Under the pieces are notes generated by a model. The model saw only the letters and a program-made list of their open reading frames with translations. It had not been told where the DNA came from and made no database searches. This document shows positions 8,587-42,737 of a stretch of DNA of 42,737 nt, one piece after another. Both the position numbers and the translations under genes were made by a program. Source of the DNA: Octopus bimaculoides (taxonomy: Eukaryota); contig NC_068982.1 in assembly GCF_001194135.2 (NCBI RefSeq), positions 106,294,530-106,337,266 on the forward strand. The letters run 5' to 3'. How positions within the stretch are numbered: position 1 is the stretch's first letter; the number at the start of each line of letters is the position of its first letter.

Positions 8587-9468
8587 TACGAGGGGTACCC
8601 AAAAGGAACTGGAATTTTGCAATATTATTTTGTTCACTCAGTTTTACATGTTTTCACGTTTATTGCCTTCAAAGTATTTTCCATTTGAAGCAATGCATTG
8701 GTCCAGATGTATTTTCCACTGTTGGAAGCGGTGCTGGAACTCTTGCGAAATGATGCCTTTCAACGCCTCCGTCATTTTTTTCTCACTTCTTCCATGTCTG
8801 CAAATTCCGTAGCACCAGCTTTCCTCACCAGTGGTGACCTTCGAAAAAAGGTCCGGATCAACTTCCAACTATTTTTTCAGTTCACGACACGCATTCAGTT
8901 GTGACTGCTTTTGACCTTCCATGAACAAGCGAAGCATAAAATTTGTTGCAACCCTTTTCATTCGCAATTCTCCGCTCAAAATTCGTTGGCAGGAGATCCA
9001 GGATATACCAGTCACATCAACAAGTTCGTCAATTGTTTGGTAACGGTCTGCCAAGATCAGTTCCTGATGTTTTCATTCATTCGGGAGGTTGACGGTCGTC
9101 CTGAACGAAGTTAGTCTTCAAGCGACAAGTGACTATTCCTAAAGCGTGGAAACCACTTATAAACTTGTGATTTCTTCATAGCAGCATCCTTGTAAGCTGT
9201 TTGAAGCATGACAACTGTTTCGGCCGCTGTTTTCTTCAGGAGAAAACAGAATTTCACAGAAGCACGCTGTTCTGTCGTTTTAGCCATCGCAAAAATCGAC
9301 AAACATGGGAGAAGCACTGCAAAACAAAGACGGACTTAATCCGTCGAAGCAAGCAGACAGACTGATGTCTGACGATCGCACCAAGTGGCATCTAGCGGCG
9401 GAAGCTCGAAATACAACGGGTTTGTCTCACAGAGAACGTTTCTGGTTTCTTTGTGTATCCCTAAGTTA
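8587..9468 (-). mobile_element. mariner (DD34D-type) transposon, internally deleted and inactive
   Basis: Minus-strand peptides MAKTTEQRASVKFCFLLKKTAAETVVMLQTAYKDAAM..QVYKWF.RF (ATG 9287), DRYQTIDELVDVTGISWISCQRILSGEL, VTTGEESWCYG and FQQWKIHLDQCIASNGKYFEG. Degenerate TIRs TA-CGAGGGGTACCCAAAAGGAACTGGAA (8587-8614) and TTCTGGTTTCTTTGTGTATCCCTAAGTTA (about 9440-9468). Confidence 0.92.
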
Positions 9469-10756: not shown

Positions 10757-11089
10757 AATATTATTAAAGTTAATAATAATATGTACGAAAATTTATGTCA
10801 ACACGACATTATCAAGGTAATCCAAACTGATGAAATTGTAGGTGGACATCTGATAAATTTTAGCTGTTAAAAAACGTTAATAAAAGAAACGCCAAACCAA
10901 AATTAACTTTGGACATGCATTCATTCACACAAGAGCGAAAGAATTTGGTCTGGCGTTTCTTTTTGTTAGCGTTTTTTAACAGTTAAGATTTTTTAGATGT
11001 TCAGTTAGAATTTCACTAATTTGGATTACCTTGACGATGTTGTGTTGACATAAATTTTCGTATATACTATTATTAATTTTAATACTATT
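10757..11089. mobile_element. Foldback/MITE-like element with ~148 bp inverted arms and a 37 bp spacer
   Basis: 10757-10904 is the reverse complement of 10942-11089 at roughly 85% identity by eye; flanked by (CA)n and (TA)n. Confidence 0.8.
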
Positions 11090-11430
11090 ATGTATATATA
11101 TATANNNNNNNNNNNNNNNNNNNNNNNNNNNNNNNNNNNNTATATATACATATGAAAACAAAATAGAATGAAACAACTACGGAAGATTTGTATTATATGG
11201 TTAAAAAAATATATTAGAATCGTCATGTTAGGAAAATGATATAAAATTTTGTGTACAGTGGTATTGTTTTGGGAGAAATAACCGGTTTCGCATTTTCTTT
11301 TCAAATATATCAAATTTCTTAACGGACGTTGTGTCATCTATTCGTTATGGTGTGATGTAGAAGAGTTCGAAACAGGGCGAGATAATCATGGAATTTTTTC
11401 GGTATAAGGGAGATAATAAAAAATGTTAGG

Positions 11431-12589: not shown

Positions 12590-12764
12590 ACTTTTAAGGG
12601 TATGGTTGATCACATCGACTAAGTAGCTCATTTGCTTTTATTTATCGACATCGGAAGGATGAAAGGGGAAAGTCGGTCTTAGGGAAATTTTAACTCTGAA
12701 CTTAGAGAAGTAACTAAATACCACAAGGCATTTTATCCGATGCTCTATCGATTCTTCCAACCCC
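12590..12764 (-). mobile_element. SINE family A, old decayed copy
   Basis: ATCGACATCGGAAGGATGAAAGGGGAAAGTCG...TAACTCTGAAC...CGATTCTTCCAA matches the family A reverse complement. Confidence 0.7.
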
Positions 12765-13164
12765 TATCCTATATCTACCAACAACCTCCCTATAGATGAT
12801 ATATTTTAAAATGGAAAACTATATAACCACAGGGCTATCGCGCGATTCATATTAGAAGATTGCTTAAATGTAGTATTTGATTTTCATTCAACACTTAGAT
12901 TATACGGTATTTGAGAAGAAATGTGTATTTATGTTAAGTAATTTAATTAGTATGAGGTACTCTTAAAGTGTATTTCGCGCTAATTATATTAGTATGATGT
13001 AAGTAATACATTTTAGTTACCACAAGCTAATGCAAGAAATTAAATATTTAACTTCATAGAAAAAGATGAAGGCCCAGAGATACAAACTTCATTACACGAC
13101 TGAAATCTATTTTGTCTGATATTCACAATTCCCAAAAGTTGAAAAATAGTAAAATCCAGAGCAA

Positions 13165-13597
13165 TTTTTACCCTGCGCGCGTAAGCGAAGGCAGGGTACT
13201 ATAATCATTTGCTTTGTCTTTTTGTCTGTGTGTTTGCAAAATTACTGGGAAACTGCAGAACGGATTTTCCCCAAATTTGGCAGAAATGCTTATTGGGTAA
13301 GTGGCTCGAAATTATGAACATTTCGTTTGATTATCTTTAAGAAACATTTTTTTTCAATCGAACTTACAAATTTCCCGATAAGCAAACGGTCATATTATTT
13401 TGTTCATTTTCTTTTTCTTATGAATCGACCCTCGCCTGCGAGCTTATAGATCATGGTGTACCTATGCGCCTAGACACGTGTGGGTACATACATACATACA
13501 TACATACATACATACATACATGCATACATACATAAATACAAACATAGATATGCGACGGTGTGTGTGTGTGTGTGTGTGTGCATGCGTGCGTCTGTGT

Positions 13598-13689
<92 letters not shown>

Positions 13690-13971
13690 AGTGATGAATT
13701 CGAGGGTTCCGTTTATTTACGAGTTGATTTCTTAAGTTCACCAGAGTATAAATACCTATAATGGTGATACTTGAAAAAATAAATAGAACTTACAAAGTTC
13801 TCGATATGCAAGTGGGCATATTATTTTGTTCACTTCCTTTTTCATATGAATCTACCCTCGTCTGTATGTGTATAGATCATGGTGTAACTGTGCGCATAGA
13901 CACGTGTGGGTACATACATACGTACATATATATGTGACTGTGTGTGTGCGTGCGTCTGTGTGTGTGCGTGC

Positions 13972-14009
<38 letters not shown>

Positions 14010-14228
14010 CGTGATGGATTCGAGGGTTTCGTTTATTTACGAGTTGATTTCTAAATTTCACCGCAGTATAAATACCTGTAATGGTGATACGTAAAAAAAT
14101 AATAATAATGATAATAATTCATTTCAATTAAAAAGCATGGGTAAGCAACACATTGTAAGCCACACTATAATTTGCAAAAAAAATTATCTGCGCGCAGGGT
14201 ATGCATCGTCCCTCCGATACTTTTTTTT
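13165..14228 (+). mobile_element. DINE-1/HINE-like non-autonomous Helentron (rolling-circle) element with internal tandem repeats
   Basis: T-run, then sub-TIR TACCCTGCGCGC (13169-13180). Short IR GCAGGGTA (13191-13198) pairs with its start. A GTCT/GTGT-rich stretch and core follow. Perfect 12 bp complementary sub-TIR GCGCGCAGGGTA (14190-14201), 3' hairpin ATCG-TCCCTC-CGAT (14205-14218), then T8 (14221-14228). Confidence 0.75.
13360..14100 (+). repeat. Two tandem monomers (13360-13785, 426 bp; 13786-14100, 315 bp), each block A + (TACA)n + (TG)n + block B
   Basis: Both start GAACTTACAAA and end AATGGTGATAC.T.AAAAAAT; the length difference lies in the microsatellites. Confidence 0.92.
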
Positions 14229-14372
14229 CTTTCTTTCATTTTTTAAATACAACCTCTATGAAGACTATCAATCCTATATTTTTTCTTTTCTGAAAATAAA
14301 TTAACTAAAATATAGATAAATAGACAGATACGCAGGTGGATGCATGCACAGGAATGGATAAACTGGTAGCTG

Positions 14373-14386
14373 CATAGATATGCGAC

Positions 14387-14429
<43 letters not shown>

Positions 14430-14777
14430 AGCGATGGATTCGAGGGTTCCGTTTATTTACGAGTTGATTTCTTAAGTTCGCCGGAGTATAAATACATATA
14501 ATGGTGATACTTAAAAAAAAAATTAAAAACTTGAACTTACAAATTTCCCGATAAGCAGGTGGGCATATCATTTTGTTCATTTCCTTTTTCATATGAATCT
14601 ACCCTCGTCTGCGTGTGTATAGATCATGGAGTACCTGTGCGTGTAGACACGTGTGGGTACATGCATACATACATACATACATACATACATACATACATAC
14701 ATACATACATACATACTTACATACATGCATACATACATACATACATACATACAAACATACATACATACATACATACA

Positions 14778-14808
<31 letters not shown>

Positions 14809-14812
14809 GCGG
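14373..14812 (+). repeat. Third, circularly permuted monomer (block B then block A) outside the HINE-like element
   Basis: Starts CATAGATATGCGACGG(TG)n + block B, then GAACTTACAAA at 14533 + block A + (TACA)n. Confidence 0.9.
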
Positions 14813-15244
14813 AGTGGCTACTACATGTACAAACATTTTAAACGCCAGAAAAAATTTTAAAATGCCATGCGACCAACTGGAAAACATCATTCCCTGATCA
14901 CTAGATAGATTAGCAGCACACTTGATATGCTGTAGCTTCAAGCTGTCTCTTCAAATGAAGGTGCACTTCAGATTCCGCTTGGTGATTCCACAGCCTCTTG
15001 CCCTTCGTCATTCCTACAATTTCGCCAACATCAAATCCTACCCAAATATTTCACTCTACCTTTACACCAAGAAATGCAACCACATCATTTAAATTCTGTT
15101 CATGTTTTCTCAACTCGCTGAAATTCATACTAAATATTAACCACGCTAGTTTATGAAGACCTGTAAAGGCTATAGTCAGGGGACATTCTATTTAAATTAA
15201 AAAGATAAAAGCAAGAAAAAAAAACAAGTAATTGATAGAGCAAC

Positions 15245-16250
<1,006 letters not shown>

Positions 16251-17257
16251 AGGGAGTGTTTCATCTGGTATTTCATATATAGATATGCAATAGAGATTCA
16301 TTATGTACATATTAATAGGTACACACGGCAAATAAACTAGTACACAGTGACGTGCGACCGCACAAACACGCGCACATACACTAGCATATATGTGTGTGTC
16401 TATACGTATGTCAGCGTGTGTGTATGTGTGTGTGTGCGCGCCCGCGCGTATGTATGTATGTACGTATAGAGAGCACTTCAACTTGACAAGTTAACTGGTA
16501 TCTCTTAGTGAATCGTCGAACAGGTTTATTCCAGTCTGTTGATATATTTTCGAATGGGACAGCATGAATACCAAGTGTTGATAATCCGGTGGTAGAACTA
16601 GTGATGAAGAGGTTAGCTCTATTAATTATGCTGCTTCATCGGATATACACATATACATACAACACGCCCCGCACATAAATGTATGTATGTATGTATGTAA
16701 GACTGTGTATATGTATATTCATATACATACGTGTGCATATATTTATATATCGCATAATATCACACACACACACACATGTATGTATGTTGTATTATGTATT
16801 ATGAATACTTGGTATTGACAACGCCCAACAAAGCAGAAATGTGCATCTAACATTCTCACCAGCCACTGGCGGGAGAATTTTCGTCTGCCTCTGATATACA
16901 CTGTGCTTTTTAAATAAAGCACGTTCGTAAAAGATATTATCTCCGGATAAATTCTGCGGTAAATTTGTGTTTTGCGATGTATTTATATTTACTATGGTAC
17001 ACAGATAGCTATTTTAATCTATTAGATTGTCTTAATTATAACGGATATATACACACTCATAACATATATGTGCGTAGATGTTTGTGTTTGTGTGTGCCTG
17101 TCATTGTTTATCTGTGTTTGTGAGCTTGTGTGAGTTTGTGTGTGCGTGTGTGCGTGCGTGTGTGTGTGTGAGTGTGTGCGCGTTTGTTTGTGTAAACTGG
17201 TTGAAGCTAAAGGTATGTTAATCATATAGCTGATCAGGCTATATTATTATATCAGCC

Positions 17258-17484
17258 AAGGCGGCCAGCTGGCAGAATCGTTAGCACGCTGGGCGAAATG
17301 CTTAACGGCATTTCGTTTGCCGCTAGGTTCTGAGTTCAAATTCCGCCGAGGTCGACACTGCCTTTCATCCTTTCGGAGTAAATTAAGTACCAGTAAATGA
17401 AGTACCAGCTGAGTACTGGTGTCGATGTAATCGACTAGTCCTCTTCCCCCAAATTCGAGGCTTCGTGCTTTCAGTAGAAAGAAT
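17258..17484 (+). mobile_element. SINE family A, full length, with 16 bp TSD
   Basis: AAGGCGGCCAGCTGGCAGAATCG...GAGTTCAAATTCC...TCAGTAGAAAGAAT; TSD TATTATTATATCAGCC at 17242-17257 and 17485-17500. Confidence 0.95.
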
Positions 17485-17829
17485 TATTATTATATCAGCC
17501 GATGATATATGATTATTAGGCTATATGATTATTATATCATCGCTAGGAATTTGTTTCCCTAGTATGTAGCGCAACGTAATTTCAAAGCATGGTTTGTCCC
17601 TCTCGGACAAAGGAGGATTTCAATAACGCGGTAATACCTAACGAAATAATCAGAGATTCTGCTCCATAATTCAACCTATTTTGCAATTGGTGTTCATACA
17701 CGTTCAGTTGTACATCTACCTGTATTGAAGCATTGAGACAGTTGTATAGATTCTATACATGGATAACCTCTTTTGGAAGAAGTGGGCCGCATGAGACAGG
17801 CGGGTAGCACTACTTCAAGGTAACTTTTC

Positions 17830-20765: not shown

Positions 20766-20987
20766 TAATAATCCTTTCTAATATAGACACAAAACCTGAA
20801 ATTTTAGTAGGAGAGAGTTAGTCTATGACGTCGGCTCCAGTGATCAACTGGTACTTATTCTATCGACCCCGAAAGGATGAAAGGCAAAGTTGACATCGGT
20901 GAGACTTGAATTTAGAACATAGAGCTGGAAGAAACGCCGCTAAGCATTCTGTATGTTGTGCTAACGATTCCGTCAGCTCGCCGCCTC
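20766..20987 (-). mobile_element. SINE family A, full length
   Basis: Reverse complement runs GAGGCGGCGAGCTGACGGAATCGTTAGCAC...TATATTAGAAAGGATTATTA. Confidence 0.9.
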
Positions 20988-22864: not shown

Positions 22865-23146
22865 GAGAACCGCTATATAGTCGCTCAACGTGCTAGAATT
22901 CACCGTCAAATTTCTTTCAAATCAGAAACTAATCGATTTTTGAAAAAAATTCTAGACTAAAAATTTTTAGACTAGGCGCAGGAATGGTTGTGTAGTAATT
23001 AGCTTGCTTACCAACCACATGGTTCCGGGTTCAGTCCCACTTCGTGGCACCTTGGGCAAGTGTCTTCTACTATAGCCTCGGGCTGACCAAAGCCTTGTGA
23101 GTGGATTTGGTAGACGGAAACTGAAAAGAAGCCCGTCGTATATATG

Positions 23147-23193
<47 letters not shown>

Positions 23194-23515
23194 TTGTGAG
23201 TCTGTGTTTGTCCCCCCACCATCGCTTGACAACCGATGCTGGTGTGTTTACGTCCCCGTAACTTAGCGGTTCGGCGAAAAGAGACCGATAGAATAAGTAC
23301 TAGGCTTACAAAGAATAAGACCTGGGGTCGATTTGTTCGACTAAAGGCGGTGCTCCAGCATGGCCGCAGTCAAATGACTGAAACAAGTAAAAGAGTAAAA
23401 GAGTAATTAACCAATATATTATTAAATATACAATATGACAAGATGGTCAGGGCTGGCATGCCTTTGATCATCGGTATACCCGATCTGTGCTGACATGGGG
23501 CGAAATAATAACAGA
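22865..23515 (+). mobile_element. Family D element split by a SINE B insertion (halves about 22865-22970 and 23406-23515)
   Basis: Left half GTCGCTCAACGTGCTAGAA...CAAAT; right half GATGGTCAGGGCTGGCATGCCTTTGATCAT...GCTGACATGGGGCGAAATAATAAC. Confidence 0.5.
22974..23405 (+). mobile_element. SINE family B, full length, with internal (TA)n(TG)n tract
   Basis: tRNA-like head AGGCGCAGGAATGGTTGTGTAG...GGGTTCAGTCCC, then CCTTGGGCAAGTGTCTT, microsatellite, and tail (AGTAAAAG)n. Confidence 0.92.
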
Positions 23516-26014: not shown

Positions 26015-26216
26015 TAATAATATTGGTCTCAGATTTTGGCACAGGAGCGAGGATAAGTCGATTACATCGTCGTCAGTGCTCAACTAGTACTTATTTTTAA
26101 GTACTAGTTGAGCAAAGTCGACCTCTGCAGAATCTGAACTCAGAACATGAAGACGGACGAAATGCTGCTAAGCATTTTGTCCGGATTGCTAACAACCCTG
26201 ACAGTTCGACACCTTT
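26015..26216 (-). mobile_element. SINE family A with an internal 16 bp inverted duplication
   Basis: Family A head and tail present; palindrome at 26078-26113 replaces the usual ATCGACCCCGAAAGGATGAAAGG segment. Confidence 0.88.
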
Positions 26217-29829: not shown

Positions 29830-29865
29830 TGTGTGTGTGTGTGTATACACACATACATAGCTATC

Positions 29866-29990
29866 CTAGCCACATCGTTTTGGGTTCAGTCCTACTGCGT
29901 GGCACCTTGGGCAAGTGTCTTCTACTATAGCCTCGGGCAGATCAAAGCCTTGTAAGTGGATTTGGTAGACGAAAACTGAAAGAAATATAT
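29866..29990 (+). mobile_element. SINE family B, 5' part
   Basis: GGGTTCAGTCCTACTGCGTGGCACCTTGGGCAAGTGTCTTCTACTATAGCCTCGGG is nearly identical to 23026-23085; a B-type 3' end also occurs at about 30378-30435. Confidence 0.85.
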
Positions 29991-30159
29991 GTTTATGTAT
30001 ATACATATATACTGGTCATCAGCACAATGTAATTTTCCAGCAACGAAAGACAATGTAATCCTCGATATAAAAGCACACCGGAATATTATGGATGGAGATC
30101 TGAGGAGGTTTTGATTAATCAAATTGACCTGGGTCTAAACAATAATTAGCTGAGCCAAA

Positions 30160-34962: not shown

Positions 34963-35183
34963 TAATATTAGTCTTAGATTTTGGCACAAGGCCAGAAATT
35001 TCGGGGGACGGGATAAGTCACTTATATTGTACCCCGTGCTCAACTGGTACGAATTTTATCGACCCCGAAAGGACGAAAGGTAAAGTCGACCTCGGCAAAA
35101 TTTGAACTCAGAACGTAAAGACGGACGAACTACCACTACGCATTTAGTCCGGCGCGGAAACGATTCTGCCAGCTTGCCGCTTT
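34963..35183 (-). mobile_element. SINE family A, full length
   Basis: Complete head-to-tail match to the family A reverse complement. Confidence 0.9.
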
Positions 35184-35195
35184 CATCTTTCTTCA

Positions 35196-35332
35196 TAATA
35201 TTATTGGTTTCACATTTTGGCACAAGGCCAGGAATTTTGATGCGGGACTAAGTCGATTACATCGTCCCCAGCATTCAATTGGTATTTATTTTACCCCGAA
35301 AGGACGAAAGACAAAATCGGCCTCGGCGGAAA
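35196..35332 (-). mobile_element. SINE family A, 5'-truncated, tandem to the previous copy
   Basis: TAATATTATTGGTTTCACATTTTGGCACAAGGCC...CCTCGGCGGAA. Confidence 0.85.
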
Positions 35333-36842: not shown

Positions 36843-37230
36843 GCCTGGAGACGGATAGGCTCCACCAGGAGTGCCATAGTAATTGAATTACAGGCATGTT
36901 TGGTCGCGCCTTCAAGTGCTTTAGTCAATTATATCAGCTCTATTATTTCACTATAAACTGAGCAGACAGCCCGATTCATCTTACACGCGACAGCAGCTGG
37001 TCAACACATACTCACAAGACGCTAATGCATGAACACTGAACGTTGATGTACAGAACATTTTCATATCCCGGACAGGTTTGGGTGTTGGTGCTTCAATGTC
37101 TTTCTTTATTAGCCACAAGCACTCAAAGAAATATATATACATGCATATATGTCCACATAAATGCACGAAAATAATTTTTAAAAAGTACGATAAACCATAT
37201 AATAATTAAAATATAGAATCATTTAAGCAT

Positions 37231-37430
37231 AAGGCGGCGAGATGGCAGAATTATTAGCACATCGGACAAAATGTTAAGCGGTATTTCTTTCGACGTCTTA
37301 CGTTTTGAATTCAAATCCTGCTGAGGTCAACTTTTTCTGTCATGCCTTCCAGATCGATAAACTAAAGTACCAGTTAAGTACTAGGGTTGATGTAATCGAC
37401 TTTTCCTCTCCCCTAAAAAATCTGGCCCTG
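37231..37430 (+). mobile_element. SINE family A
   Basis: AAGGCGGCGAGATGGCAGAATT...GAATTCAAATCC...AAGTACCAGTT...GATGTAATCGACTT. Confidence 0.88.
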
Positions 37431-38582: not shown

Positions 38583-38796
38583 ATAATAATAATTCTTTCT
38601 ACTATAGGCAAAGGCCTGAAATTTCGGGGGAGGGGGTATGTCGGTTACATGCTCAACTGGTATTTATTTTGTCGACCCCGAAAAGATGAAAGGCAAAGTC
38701 GATCTCGATGACATTCGAACTCAGAATGTAAAGACGGACGAAATCCCGCTAAGCATTTAGTCCGGCGTATTAAAGATTCTGCCAGTTTTCCGCTTT
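38583..38796 (-). mobile_element. SINE family A, full length
   Basis: Tail TATAGTAGAAAGAATTATTATTAT on the minus strand; head AAAGCGGAAAACTGGCAGAATC. Confidence 0.9.
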
Positions 38797-38819
38797 AATA
38801 ATAATAATAATTATTATTA

Positions 38820-40848: not shown

Positions 40849-41197
40849 GTAGAGTAGGTCATCAGACACTACATAACAAGGGAACCGGTAGTTCTGCAAA
40901 CTCTATGGAAAACTTTAGTTTTGCATTGACTAGACTACTCTTCTTCACAGATTTGGTCTCTAAGCACACAGGGTTTCATTGAAGAAATTGAAGGGCTGCA
41001 AAGAACATTCTTCAGTTAAACAACTTCGGTTATATGACTTAAATGCTGGGAGGTCTCAAAGCTCTAAGTTTCTACTCCCTTGAACAACGTAGAGTAAGTG
41101 AGTGAGTGGGACAAAGAGACAGGGAGAGAGAGATAGAGACAGAGACAGAAACAGACAGACAGACAGACGGACGGACGGACGGACGGACGGACGGACG

Positions 41198-41252
<55 letters not shown>

Positions 41253-41630
41253 GGACAGACAGACAGACGGACAGACCGATGTTGATTTTTATGAATGGAA
41301 AATCTTGGAAGGTCATTTTCCAAAACTTTGGCATTAAAGAAAACTTTAATGCAAGAACTAGTAGTTACTGCCAACTTCTGCATATACCAACTTCAAAATC
41401 ACGAGCAAAAACAATATACTGCAACAATTTGATATTCAGAGGTGCTCTGTATTCAACTGTCTACCTAGAGAAATCAGAAACGTAAAAAGGCACCTTTACG
41501 GAATATTTAAGAAAACATTGGATAAACTACTAGCCAAAATACCAGCCAACTATAAATGGCTACATTCAAGGAAGATCAGCTGTTACTAATTCAATGATAA
41601 ACCAACTTCTAGTCACAAAGCTTGAACAAA
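40848..41630 (+). mobile_element. CR1-group LINE ORF2 C-terminal fragment, interrupted by a microsatellite
   Basis: Across frameshifts: VIRHYITREPVVLQTLWKTLVLH*LDYSSSQIWS; EIEGLQRTF; LKALSFYSLEQRR; [repeat]; WKILEG; FGI; KTIYCNNLIFRG; FNCLPREIRN; IFKKTLDKLLAKIP; GYIQGRSAVTNSMINQ. Confidence 0.82.
41097..41277. repeat. (GA)n-(GACA)n-(GGAC)n-(GACA)n compound microsatellite inside the LINE frame
   Basis: Direct reading. Confidence 0.95.
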
Positions 41631-42169: not shown

Positions 42170-42737
42170 TTCGACTCCTATGATTTTCCAATTGGGTTCA
42201 TGTCAGGAGATTGGCTCGGCCAAGGAAGCTTTTTGATCCCATTTTCAGTCAGCCATTGTTGATTCCTTTTCGCTGTGTGGCATAGAGCCCCATCTTCCAT
42301 GAATAAAAACTCATTTTTTGGTTATGTTATCGTGTTAATACATCGGAAGTAGTCCTTGCTTAGGTATTTTGATGTAATTTTCAGAGTTTATGGTTCCAAC
42401 ACATTCGATCAGCTCAGAACGACCATTGCTGATGACAGCTCCCCACACCATTACAGAGATACCGCCATGTTTCACAGTTGGTTGGAGTCGTTTCAAATCA
42501 AATTCTTGATTGGGAAGCCTCCAGACCCAAACTCGTCCACTGTCTGAAAATAATGCAAATCTAGATTCATCTGAGAAAATCACTCTATCCTAAAACGAAC
42601 TGGATTTTTCTGACATCTCCTTAGCCCATTTCTTTCTTTTCATGATATTAATTGGTTGAAGGAGAGGTTTTCTTCTAGCTGCTCGTCCATAATACCCATG
42701 CTATGCACACACGTTCTTTGACTAACTTCTAGCTGTT
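42170..42737 (-). pseudogene. Tc1-family (DD34E) transposase relic, runs off the window end
   Basis: GYYGRAARRKPLL...[16 protein letters not shown]...TVKHGG.SVMVWG...; after a frameshift FMEDGALCHTAK...LPWPSQSPDMNPIG. There are 34 residues between the second D and the expected E position, where the E codon is damaged. Confidence 0.92.

Follow-up and report, generated by a model that had tools for sequence, protein, structure and literature searches.

Organization of the locus

We analysed a 42,737-nt stretch of the Octopus bimaculoides genome (contig NC_068982.1, positions 106,294,530–106,337,266, forward strand), referred to here as the window: a microsatellite-rich draft scaffold with ten N gaps, a G+C content of 35% and no convincing host gene. 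At 13165–14228, two inverted repeats (subTIRs) close to T-runs enclose two long tandem monomers, and approximately 1.1 monomers of the same kind follow outside. The features are listed below; L008 and L014 are loci in metagenome contigs that carry a matching 5′ end.

13165–13169, forward strand: 5′ T-run (T5), proposed as the 5′ boundary; the subTIR begins with the final T of this run
13169–13180, forward strand: 5′ subTIR TACCCTGCGCGC; an identical 12-mer heads L008 and L014
13191–13198, forward strand: internal repeat GCAGGGTA, pairing with nt 1–8 of the subTIR; the same in L008 and L014
13213–13238, forward strand: degenerate GTCT/GT tract; longer GTCY-type tracts occupy the same position in L008 and L014
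13239–13359, forward strand: unique left-flank segment from the microsatellite to the first monomer; not monomer-derived, weakly like L008/L014
13360–13785, forward strand: monomer 1 (426 bp)
13786–14101, forward strand: monomer 2 (316 bp)
14102–14189, forward strand: A-rich unique right-flank segment ahead of the 3′ subTIR; not monomer-derived
14190–14201, forward strand: 3′ subTIR GCGCGCAGGGTA, within the palindrome CTGCGCGCAG
14202–14228, forward strand: 3′ tail TGCATCGTCCCTCCGATAC and T8 (14221–14228); the 3′ terminus would lie somewhere in the T-rich tract 14221–14244
14229–14372, no strand assigned: T-rich spacer, presumed host flank; unrelated to the monomer or the flanks
14373–14817, forward strand: approximately 1.1 outer monomers, 87–93% identical to the inner units

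Inverted repeats, hairpins and T-runs

The 3′ subTIR is the exact reverse complement of the 5′ subTIR, and this 12-bp pair accounts for the only two matches to the TACCCTGCGCGC 12-mer in the window, with up to two mismatches permitted. The window has about 20 distinct perfect inverted repeats of at least 12 bp with arms separated by no more than 1.2 kb; the G+C content of the TACCCTGCGCGC/GCGCGCAGGGTA pair is 9/12, including three CpGs, as against at most 6/12 for the other pairs. Under a first-order Markov model, the chance of TACCCTGCGCGC is 3.7e-9 per site, or approximately 4e-6 for a partner within 1.2 kb. The beginning of the 5′ arm (TACCCTGC, 13169–13176) pairs with GCAGGGTA across a 14-nt loop, giving a stem-loop of −9 kcal/mol (z = −2.5; 4 of 200 shuffled sequences folded equally well). 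GCAGGGTA starts 10 nt past the 5′ subTIR, and the 5′ half of this internal repeat pair lies inside the subTIR. On the outer sides, T5 and T8 have a joint chance of approximately 3.5e-5 given the window's own run frequencies. Relative to the T-runs, the placement of the arms is asymmetric: the 5′ arm adjoins T5 (0–4 nt), and the 3′ arm stands 19 nt ahead of T8 (19–27 nt to or through the run), compared with 38–60 nt in mite HINEs (PMC4067079). These results bear out the 12-bp sub-TIRs, asymmetric in relation to the T-runs, the 5′ stem-loop and the T-run flanks on which an earlier note, made from the letters of this DNA, had based its reading of a DINE-1/HINE-like rolling-circle element carrying a tandem array.

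The 3′ hairpin described in the same note did not hold up. Only stems of 3–4 bp form there (−2.8 kcal/mol, z = 0.05), 102 of 200 shuffles fold equally well, and folding of 14185–14380 yielded nothing significant (z −0.74), with no prominent hairpin around the proposed 3′ terminus; the palindrome in which the 3′ subTIR is embedded is 10 nt long (14188–14197). The GTCT-like tract is present but minimal, consisting of two GTCT units followed by GTGTGT. Canonical Helitrons have a 5′ TC and a 3′ CTRR with a 16–20-nt hairpin approximately 11 bp from the 3′ end, and insert at A/T (PMC4067079); the element here reads TTTTTACCC at its start and CCGATACTTTTTTTT at its end, with no hairpin, and so does not have these ends. 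The dinucleotide TA adjoins the outer side of both 10-bp inner arms (CCCTGCGCGC and GCGCGCAGGG); it is self-complementary and reads as part of the 12-bp repeat.

Tandem monomers inside and beyond the proposed element

The inner array consists of exactly two complete monomers between unique flanks. Each comprises, in order, a 125-bp first half, a (TACA)n tract, ATAGATATGCGACGG, a (TG)n tract and a second half of approximately 94 bp. The tracts are (TACA)16.5 at 13485–13550 and (GT)65 at 13558–13687 in monomer 1, and (TACA)5.5 at 13911–13932 and (TG)34.5 at 13939–14007 in monomer 2, which agrees with the earlier description of 300–430-bp monomers that each contain two microsatellites. The claim that the element carries the array needs qualification: two monomers lie within it, but the array is not confined to it. 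About 145 bp past the proposed 3′ end, a second half with (GT)20 (14373–14532) is followed by a first half with (TACA)37.5 (14533–14817). This outer piece is shifted in phase, starting at CATAGATATGCGACG and ending at ATATGCGGAGTGG, which are the same point of the monomer. As both ends fall on one monomer position (ATATGCG...), it amounts to one monomer length plus about 13 bp, for which the chance under random truncation was estimated at approximately 7%.

Identities between halves are 87–93% for outer versus inner units and 85–89% for inner versus inner units; the resulting divergence of 7–15% suggests an old copy. Neither the 144-bp spacer nor the sequence after 14817 is related to the monomer or to the left or right flank, and an origin from diverged pieces of the monomer was rejected for 14229–14372, for the tail of the left flank and for the right flank (z −0.7 to 2.0). 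With just 2.0 plus approximately 1.1 units, the locus holds no long head-to-tail satellite array.

Because the monomer also occurs past the proposed 3′ end, the transposition unit is not securely delimited. Most simply, the outer monomers would be the remnant of a second, truncated family copy or a local spill-over of the array; they may equally be a local duplication or a sign of wrongly drawn boundaries. The outer unit could also represent a first step toward a free tandem array, for example, through re-insertion of a monomer circle or bypass of the 3′ end. A related, doubtful alternative keeps the Helentron ends and redraws the unit: if the locus were a composite of two HINE copies, adjacent or recombined, or the product of end bypass, 14102–14372 would be internal and the array 13360–14817 would form one larger or rearranged structure. 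The identity values fit this arrangement, as do the length of the interruption (271 bp, close to that of the missing half monomer plus its microsatellite) and a 3′ terminus without a convincing hairpin. Against it, the downstream sequence up to 15000 holds neither a further subTIR nor another left or right flank, and the array inside the proposed element is exactly two complete monomers with unique sequence on both sides.

Matching 5′ ends in metagenome contigs

We scanned metagenome, prokaryote-genome and viral collections with the pattern TACCCTGCGCGC-N8–20-GCAGGGTA, leaving the preceding T and the following microsatellite outside the pattern, and obtained 31 loci. Three of these lie on AT-richer contigs and represent two distinct sequences, L006/L008 and L014. 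In each of them, TT, TACCCTGCGCGC, a spacer and GCAGGGTA lead straight into a GTCY-type microsatellite; a preceding T and a following microsatellite are features that published descriptions give for HINE left flanks (PMC4067079, PMC7492417). The remaining 28 loci are mostly GC-rich and of prokaryote type, and none has the microsatellite; the 14 from prokaryote genomes and viral contigs look like chance hairpins. L006 has an exon (18–404) with the paired-class homeobox OAR motif (PF03826, 26.5 bits, cutoff 20.1) and is therefore animal DNA. The left flanks of L008 and L014 are 78–85% identical; a second repeat (79%) is common to L008 180–376 and L014 15–202, 0.6–1.1 kb upstream of the HINE end.

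The octopus locus has the identical TT, TACCCTGCGCGC and GCAGGGTA, and then a GT/GTCY tract, in common with L006/L008 and L014; the spacer differs, and the microsatellite is longer in the contigs. Past the microsatellite, the left flank of the window is weakly similar to those of L008 and L014 (z 1.8–3.4). The L008 and L014 contigs are short, with no tandem array or 3′ end visible on them. In the three independent 5′ ends (window, L008 and L014), a T precedes TACCC. The TT and GTCY arrangement in two distinct animal-type contigs is the best outside support for a HINE at the octopus locus.

Search for further copies and a coding partner

No second copy of a terminus or monomer lies in the other 41 kb of the window, and a self-BLAST of 13000–15000 against the window returned no copy outside 13356–14825. 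We also retrieved one 20-kb locus each from O. vulgaris (L032) and O. sinensis (L035) by means of the Tc1 and mariner remnants of the window. Neither termini nor monomers are present in these 20 kb of O. vulgaris and 20 kb of O. sinensis DNA, which have many other repeats in common with the window (up to 91% identity); the absence from this 40 kb of other octopus DNA is at best weak negative evidence. The element is likewise absent from two loci of the ENA assembly ERZ26859072, which belong to another organism (67% identity, Tc1 only). Exact scans of the metagenome, prokaryote-genome and viral collections with a 22-nt monomer core gave no match. The window has no Rep/helicase ORF, and a spurious 95-amino-acid ORF across the monomer matched just low-complexity TH repeats in the protein database. 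Rfam and tRNA scans of the window, made with a SINE in mind, returned nothing. A resemblance to a GATGAAATTTGG-like HINE 'core' motif was not counted as evidence; no relevant paper came up when the literature was searched for the subTIR or for this motif.

A further alternative is that the locus holds no mobile element at all. A locus-specific, minisatellite-like tandem duplication built around two microsatellites, with an inverted repeat and T-runs around it by chance, would account for the lack of a further copy in the window, in the octopus loci and in the metagenome, prokaryote-genome and viral collections, for the repeat units that run past the supposed 3′ end and, 12-bp inverted repeats as such being common in the window, for the subTIRs. 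We nevertheless regard it as unlikely, as this particular 12-mer is very improbable by composition, the pair is placed exactly at the T-runs, and unrelated animal DNA has GTCY microsatellites headed by the same 12-mer and internal repeat.

Other repeats in the window

A remnant of a Tc1-like transposase occupies 42185–42737 (reverse strand) and runs off the end of the window; its segment 42338–42589 (reverse strand) has 85% protein identity to an O. vulgaris entry, and the DNA is 90.6% identical to a copy on O. vulgaris chromosome OX597817.1 (L032). A mariner-like remnant at approximately 8592–9452 (reverse strand) is frame-shifted and internally deleted, its N-terminal part leading straight into the C-terminal end with loss of the catalytic core; it matches an O. 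sinensis protein, and its DNA is 78–82% identical to a copy in L035. A dispersed family of approximately 200 bp, SINE-like in size, is found in both orientations at 1648–1787, 2492–2710, 12637–12756, 17240–17495, 20767–20986, 26019–26207, 34964–35331, 37212–37430 and 38588–38806, with many copies also in L035 and one region in L032. Two copies of this family face to face may constitute the 17-bp inverted repeat 1771/2562. A repeat of approximately 430 bp, at 22973–23407 and 29860–30012, is 90–91% identical to three places in the 20 kb of L035.

An imperfect palindrome of approximately 280 bp (10784–11062), with nested perfect arm pairs of 12–21 bp centred near 10923, lies beside the N gap at 11105 and may be a foldback or MITE-like element. 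At 41150–41352 (reverse strand), a (GTCY)n microsatellite of approximately 140 bp has two hairpins of 8–9 bp ahead of it. This segment may mark the left flank of a further HINE family; as a candidate second left flank it was set aside, there being no matching 3′ subTIR before the N gap and no significant similarity to 13240–13360 (z 2.3).

Interpretation of the element

A cut-and-paste Tc1/mariner (Stowaway-like) MITE with 10-bp TIRs (CCCTGCGCGC, 13171–13180; GCGCGCAGGG, 14190–14199), a duplicated TA and an internal tandem repeat agrees with the TA that lies directly beside both arms and reads as part of the 12-bp repeat, and with the Tc1 and mariner remnants of the same window, but is improbable in view of the nested internal repeat, the GTCY tract and the asymmetric T-runs, which are HINE features not described for Tc1/mariner MITEs, and of the T before TACCC in all three 5′ ends: a Helentron that terminates in T predicts this base, whereas under a TA duplication it would be a coincidence.

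We favour the reading of 13165 to approximately 14228 as an old, non-coding Helentron-associated HINE of DINE-1 type, with a probability of roughly 0.6. HINEs, as defined by Thomas et al. (PMC4067079), have subTIRs of 12–15 bp, a 3′ palindrome and T strings at the boundaries, and insert into TT without duplication, with microsatellites and central repeats optional; in DINE-1, the 5′ subTIR contains the 5′ half of a short internal repeat located 3–22 bp away (PMC4067079). Among these features, the octopus locus has the subTIR, the internal repeat, the central repeats and the T boundary; the microsatellite is weakly developed and the 3′ palindrome is no better than chance. The DINE-1/HINE reading of the earlier note is partly supported: it holds for the first four, and falls short at the 3′ hairpin, the minimal GTCT tract and the array that spills over the proposed end.

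Several lines of evidence argue for a HINE: the 12-bp inverted repeat is exact and compositionally improbable; the internal-repeat hairpin is nested as described for DINE-1 and for the Cg_HINEs of oyster; T5 and T8 at the outer ends match the T strings of Helentrons and the oligo-T sites of Cg_HINEs; two tandem monomers stand between unique flanks, as in Cg_HINEs; L006/L008 and L014 have TT before, and a GTCY-type microsatellite after, the same subTIR and internal repeat; and the TACCC(T) start is common to the subTIRs of the partner Helentrons of Drosophila DINE-1. Arguing against it are the lack of a second copy of terminus or monomer in the rest of the window and in the two 20-kb loci of O. 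vulgaris and O. sinensis, the 3′ palindrome at chance level, the minimal GTCT tract, the weak similarity to the metagenome left flanks past the microsatellite, the monomer beyond the 3′ end, the lack of a Rep/helicase ORF in the window and the TA beside both arms, which fits a TA-duplicating TIR element too. In O. vulgaris, a Helitron expansion has been placed at a Jukes–Cantor distance of 0.09 (PMC13282606), with which the divergence of the octopus monomer halves is compatible.

What the locus itself offers is anatomy, and the steps of mobilization are those that we infer from the family. The Rep/helicase(/endonuclease) protein of an autonomous Helentron would have mobilized the element in trans, recognizing the subTIR hairpin and nicking the T-rich terminus. 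One strand would then have been peeled off 5′ to 3′ up to the region of the 3′ subTIR and inserted, with no target-site duplication, between a pair of Ts in T-rich target DNA. The monomers would be passengers; unequal exchange would alter their number, and slippage their (TACA)n and (TG)n tracts. The octopus copy is probably no longer mobile.

If confirmed genome-wide, the element would represent a structurally defined HINE family in a cephalopod and widen the Helentron-to-satellite link of Drosophila and bivalves: a useful annotation, and no new principle. As each monomer has two microsatellites, it could also help to explain why octopus microsatellites often have repetitive flanks in common.

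Comparison with known systems

The earlier note knew of no cephalopod counterpart described with 300–430-bp monomers that each hold two length-variable microsatellites, a claim of novelty that overstates the case. HINEs with tandem repeats are established in Drosophila, bivalves and other invertebrates (PMC4067079, PMC7492417) and well described in molluscs, namely bivalves (PMC7492417), and Helitron-class repeats have already been annotated in octopus genomes (PMC6279123, PMC13282606), with rolling-circle elements making up 0.7% of O. bimaculoides and 3.7% of O. minor (PMC6279123). Our literature search returned no paper describing a cephalopod HINE. The peculiarities of the octopus element are modest, consisting of long monomers with two embedded microsatellites and an extra unit outside the element.

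The closest parallels in mollusc hosts are the Cg_HINEs of the Pacific oyster, together with pearl, DTC84 and MgE of bivalves, all of them non-autonomous Helentrons that carry tandem repeats (PMC7492417). Cg_HINEs have subTIRs of 11–12 bp, an internal repeat of 7–12 bp and a spacer of 1–12 bp (Vojvoda Zeljko et al., PMC7492417), as well as GTCY/GTCC/GTCK microsatellites, mostly no more than five monomers, and oligo-T targets (PMC7492417). The octopus element follows this module order. A left flank with subTIR, internal repeat and a GTCY-type tract, minimal in the octopus, leads to a variable segment and a short array, and then to a right flank with the 3′ subTIR; T-rich DNA lies at the insertion sites of Cg_HINEs and at the proposed ends of the octopus element. 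The oyster monomers measure 140–180 bp, whereas those of the octopus measure 316–426 bp and each contain two long microsatellites; unlike Cg_HINEs, the octopus element has no detectable 3′ palindrome. We found no sequence match between the octopus element and the oyster supplementary data.

A second parallel is DINE-1/INE-1 of Drosophila. The subTIRs of the DINE-1 partner Helentrons read ATACCCTTGCAA(G) and ATACCCGTTACTC (Table S2 of PMC4067079), and in Helentron-Da-40, -Dw-40 and -Dy-60.1 they start ATACCCT or ATACCCG, with (A)TACCC(T) in common with the octopus (PMC4067079). The remainder differs, being GCGCGC in the octopus and TGCAAG or GTTACTC in the partner Helentrons. The DINE-1 core sequence is not demonstrated in the octopus element, where the 3′ stem-loop is also unsupported. 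Both DINE-1 and the octopus element have an internal repeat with its 5′ half in the subTIR, a microsatellite (weakly developed in the octopus) and TT or T-rich ends, with central repeats optional in DINE-1. The TACCCTGC-type subTIR hairpin may be conserved in flies, octopus and another animal; if so, this would suggest that one lineage of Helentron Rep proteins has a recognition site that is both ancient and conserved. The joint proposition that a HINE-borne repeat has here been caught just outside its carrier, and that the subTIR hairpin is conserved from fly to octopus to another animal, is a questionable one.
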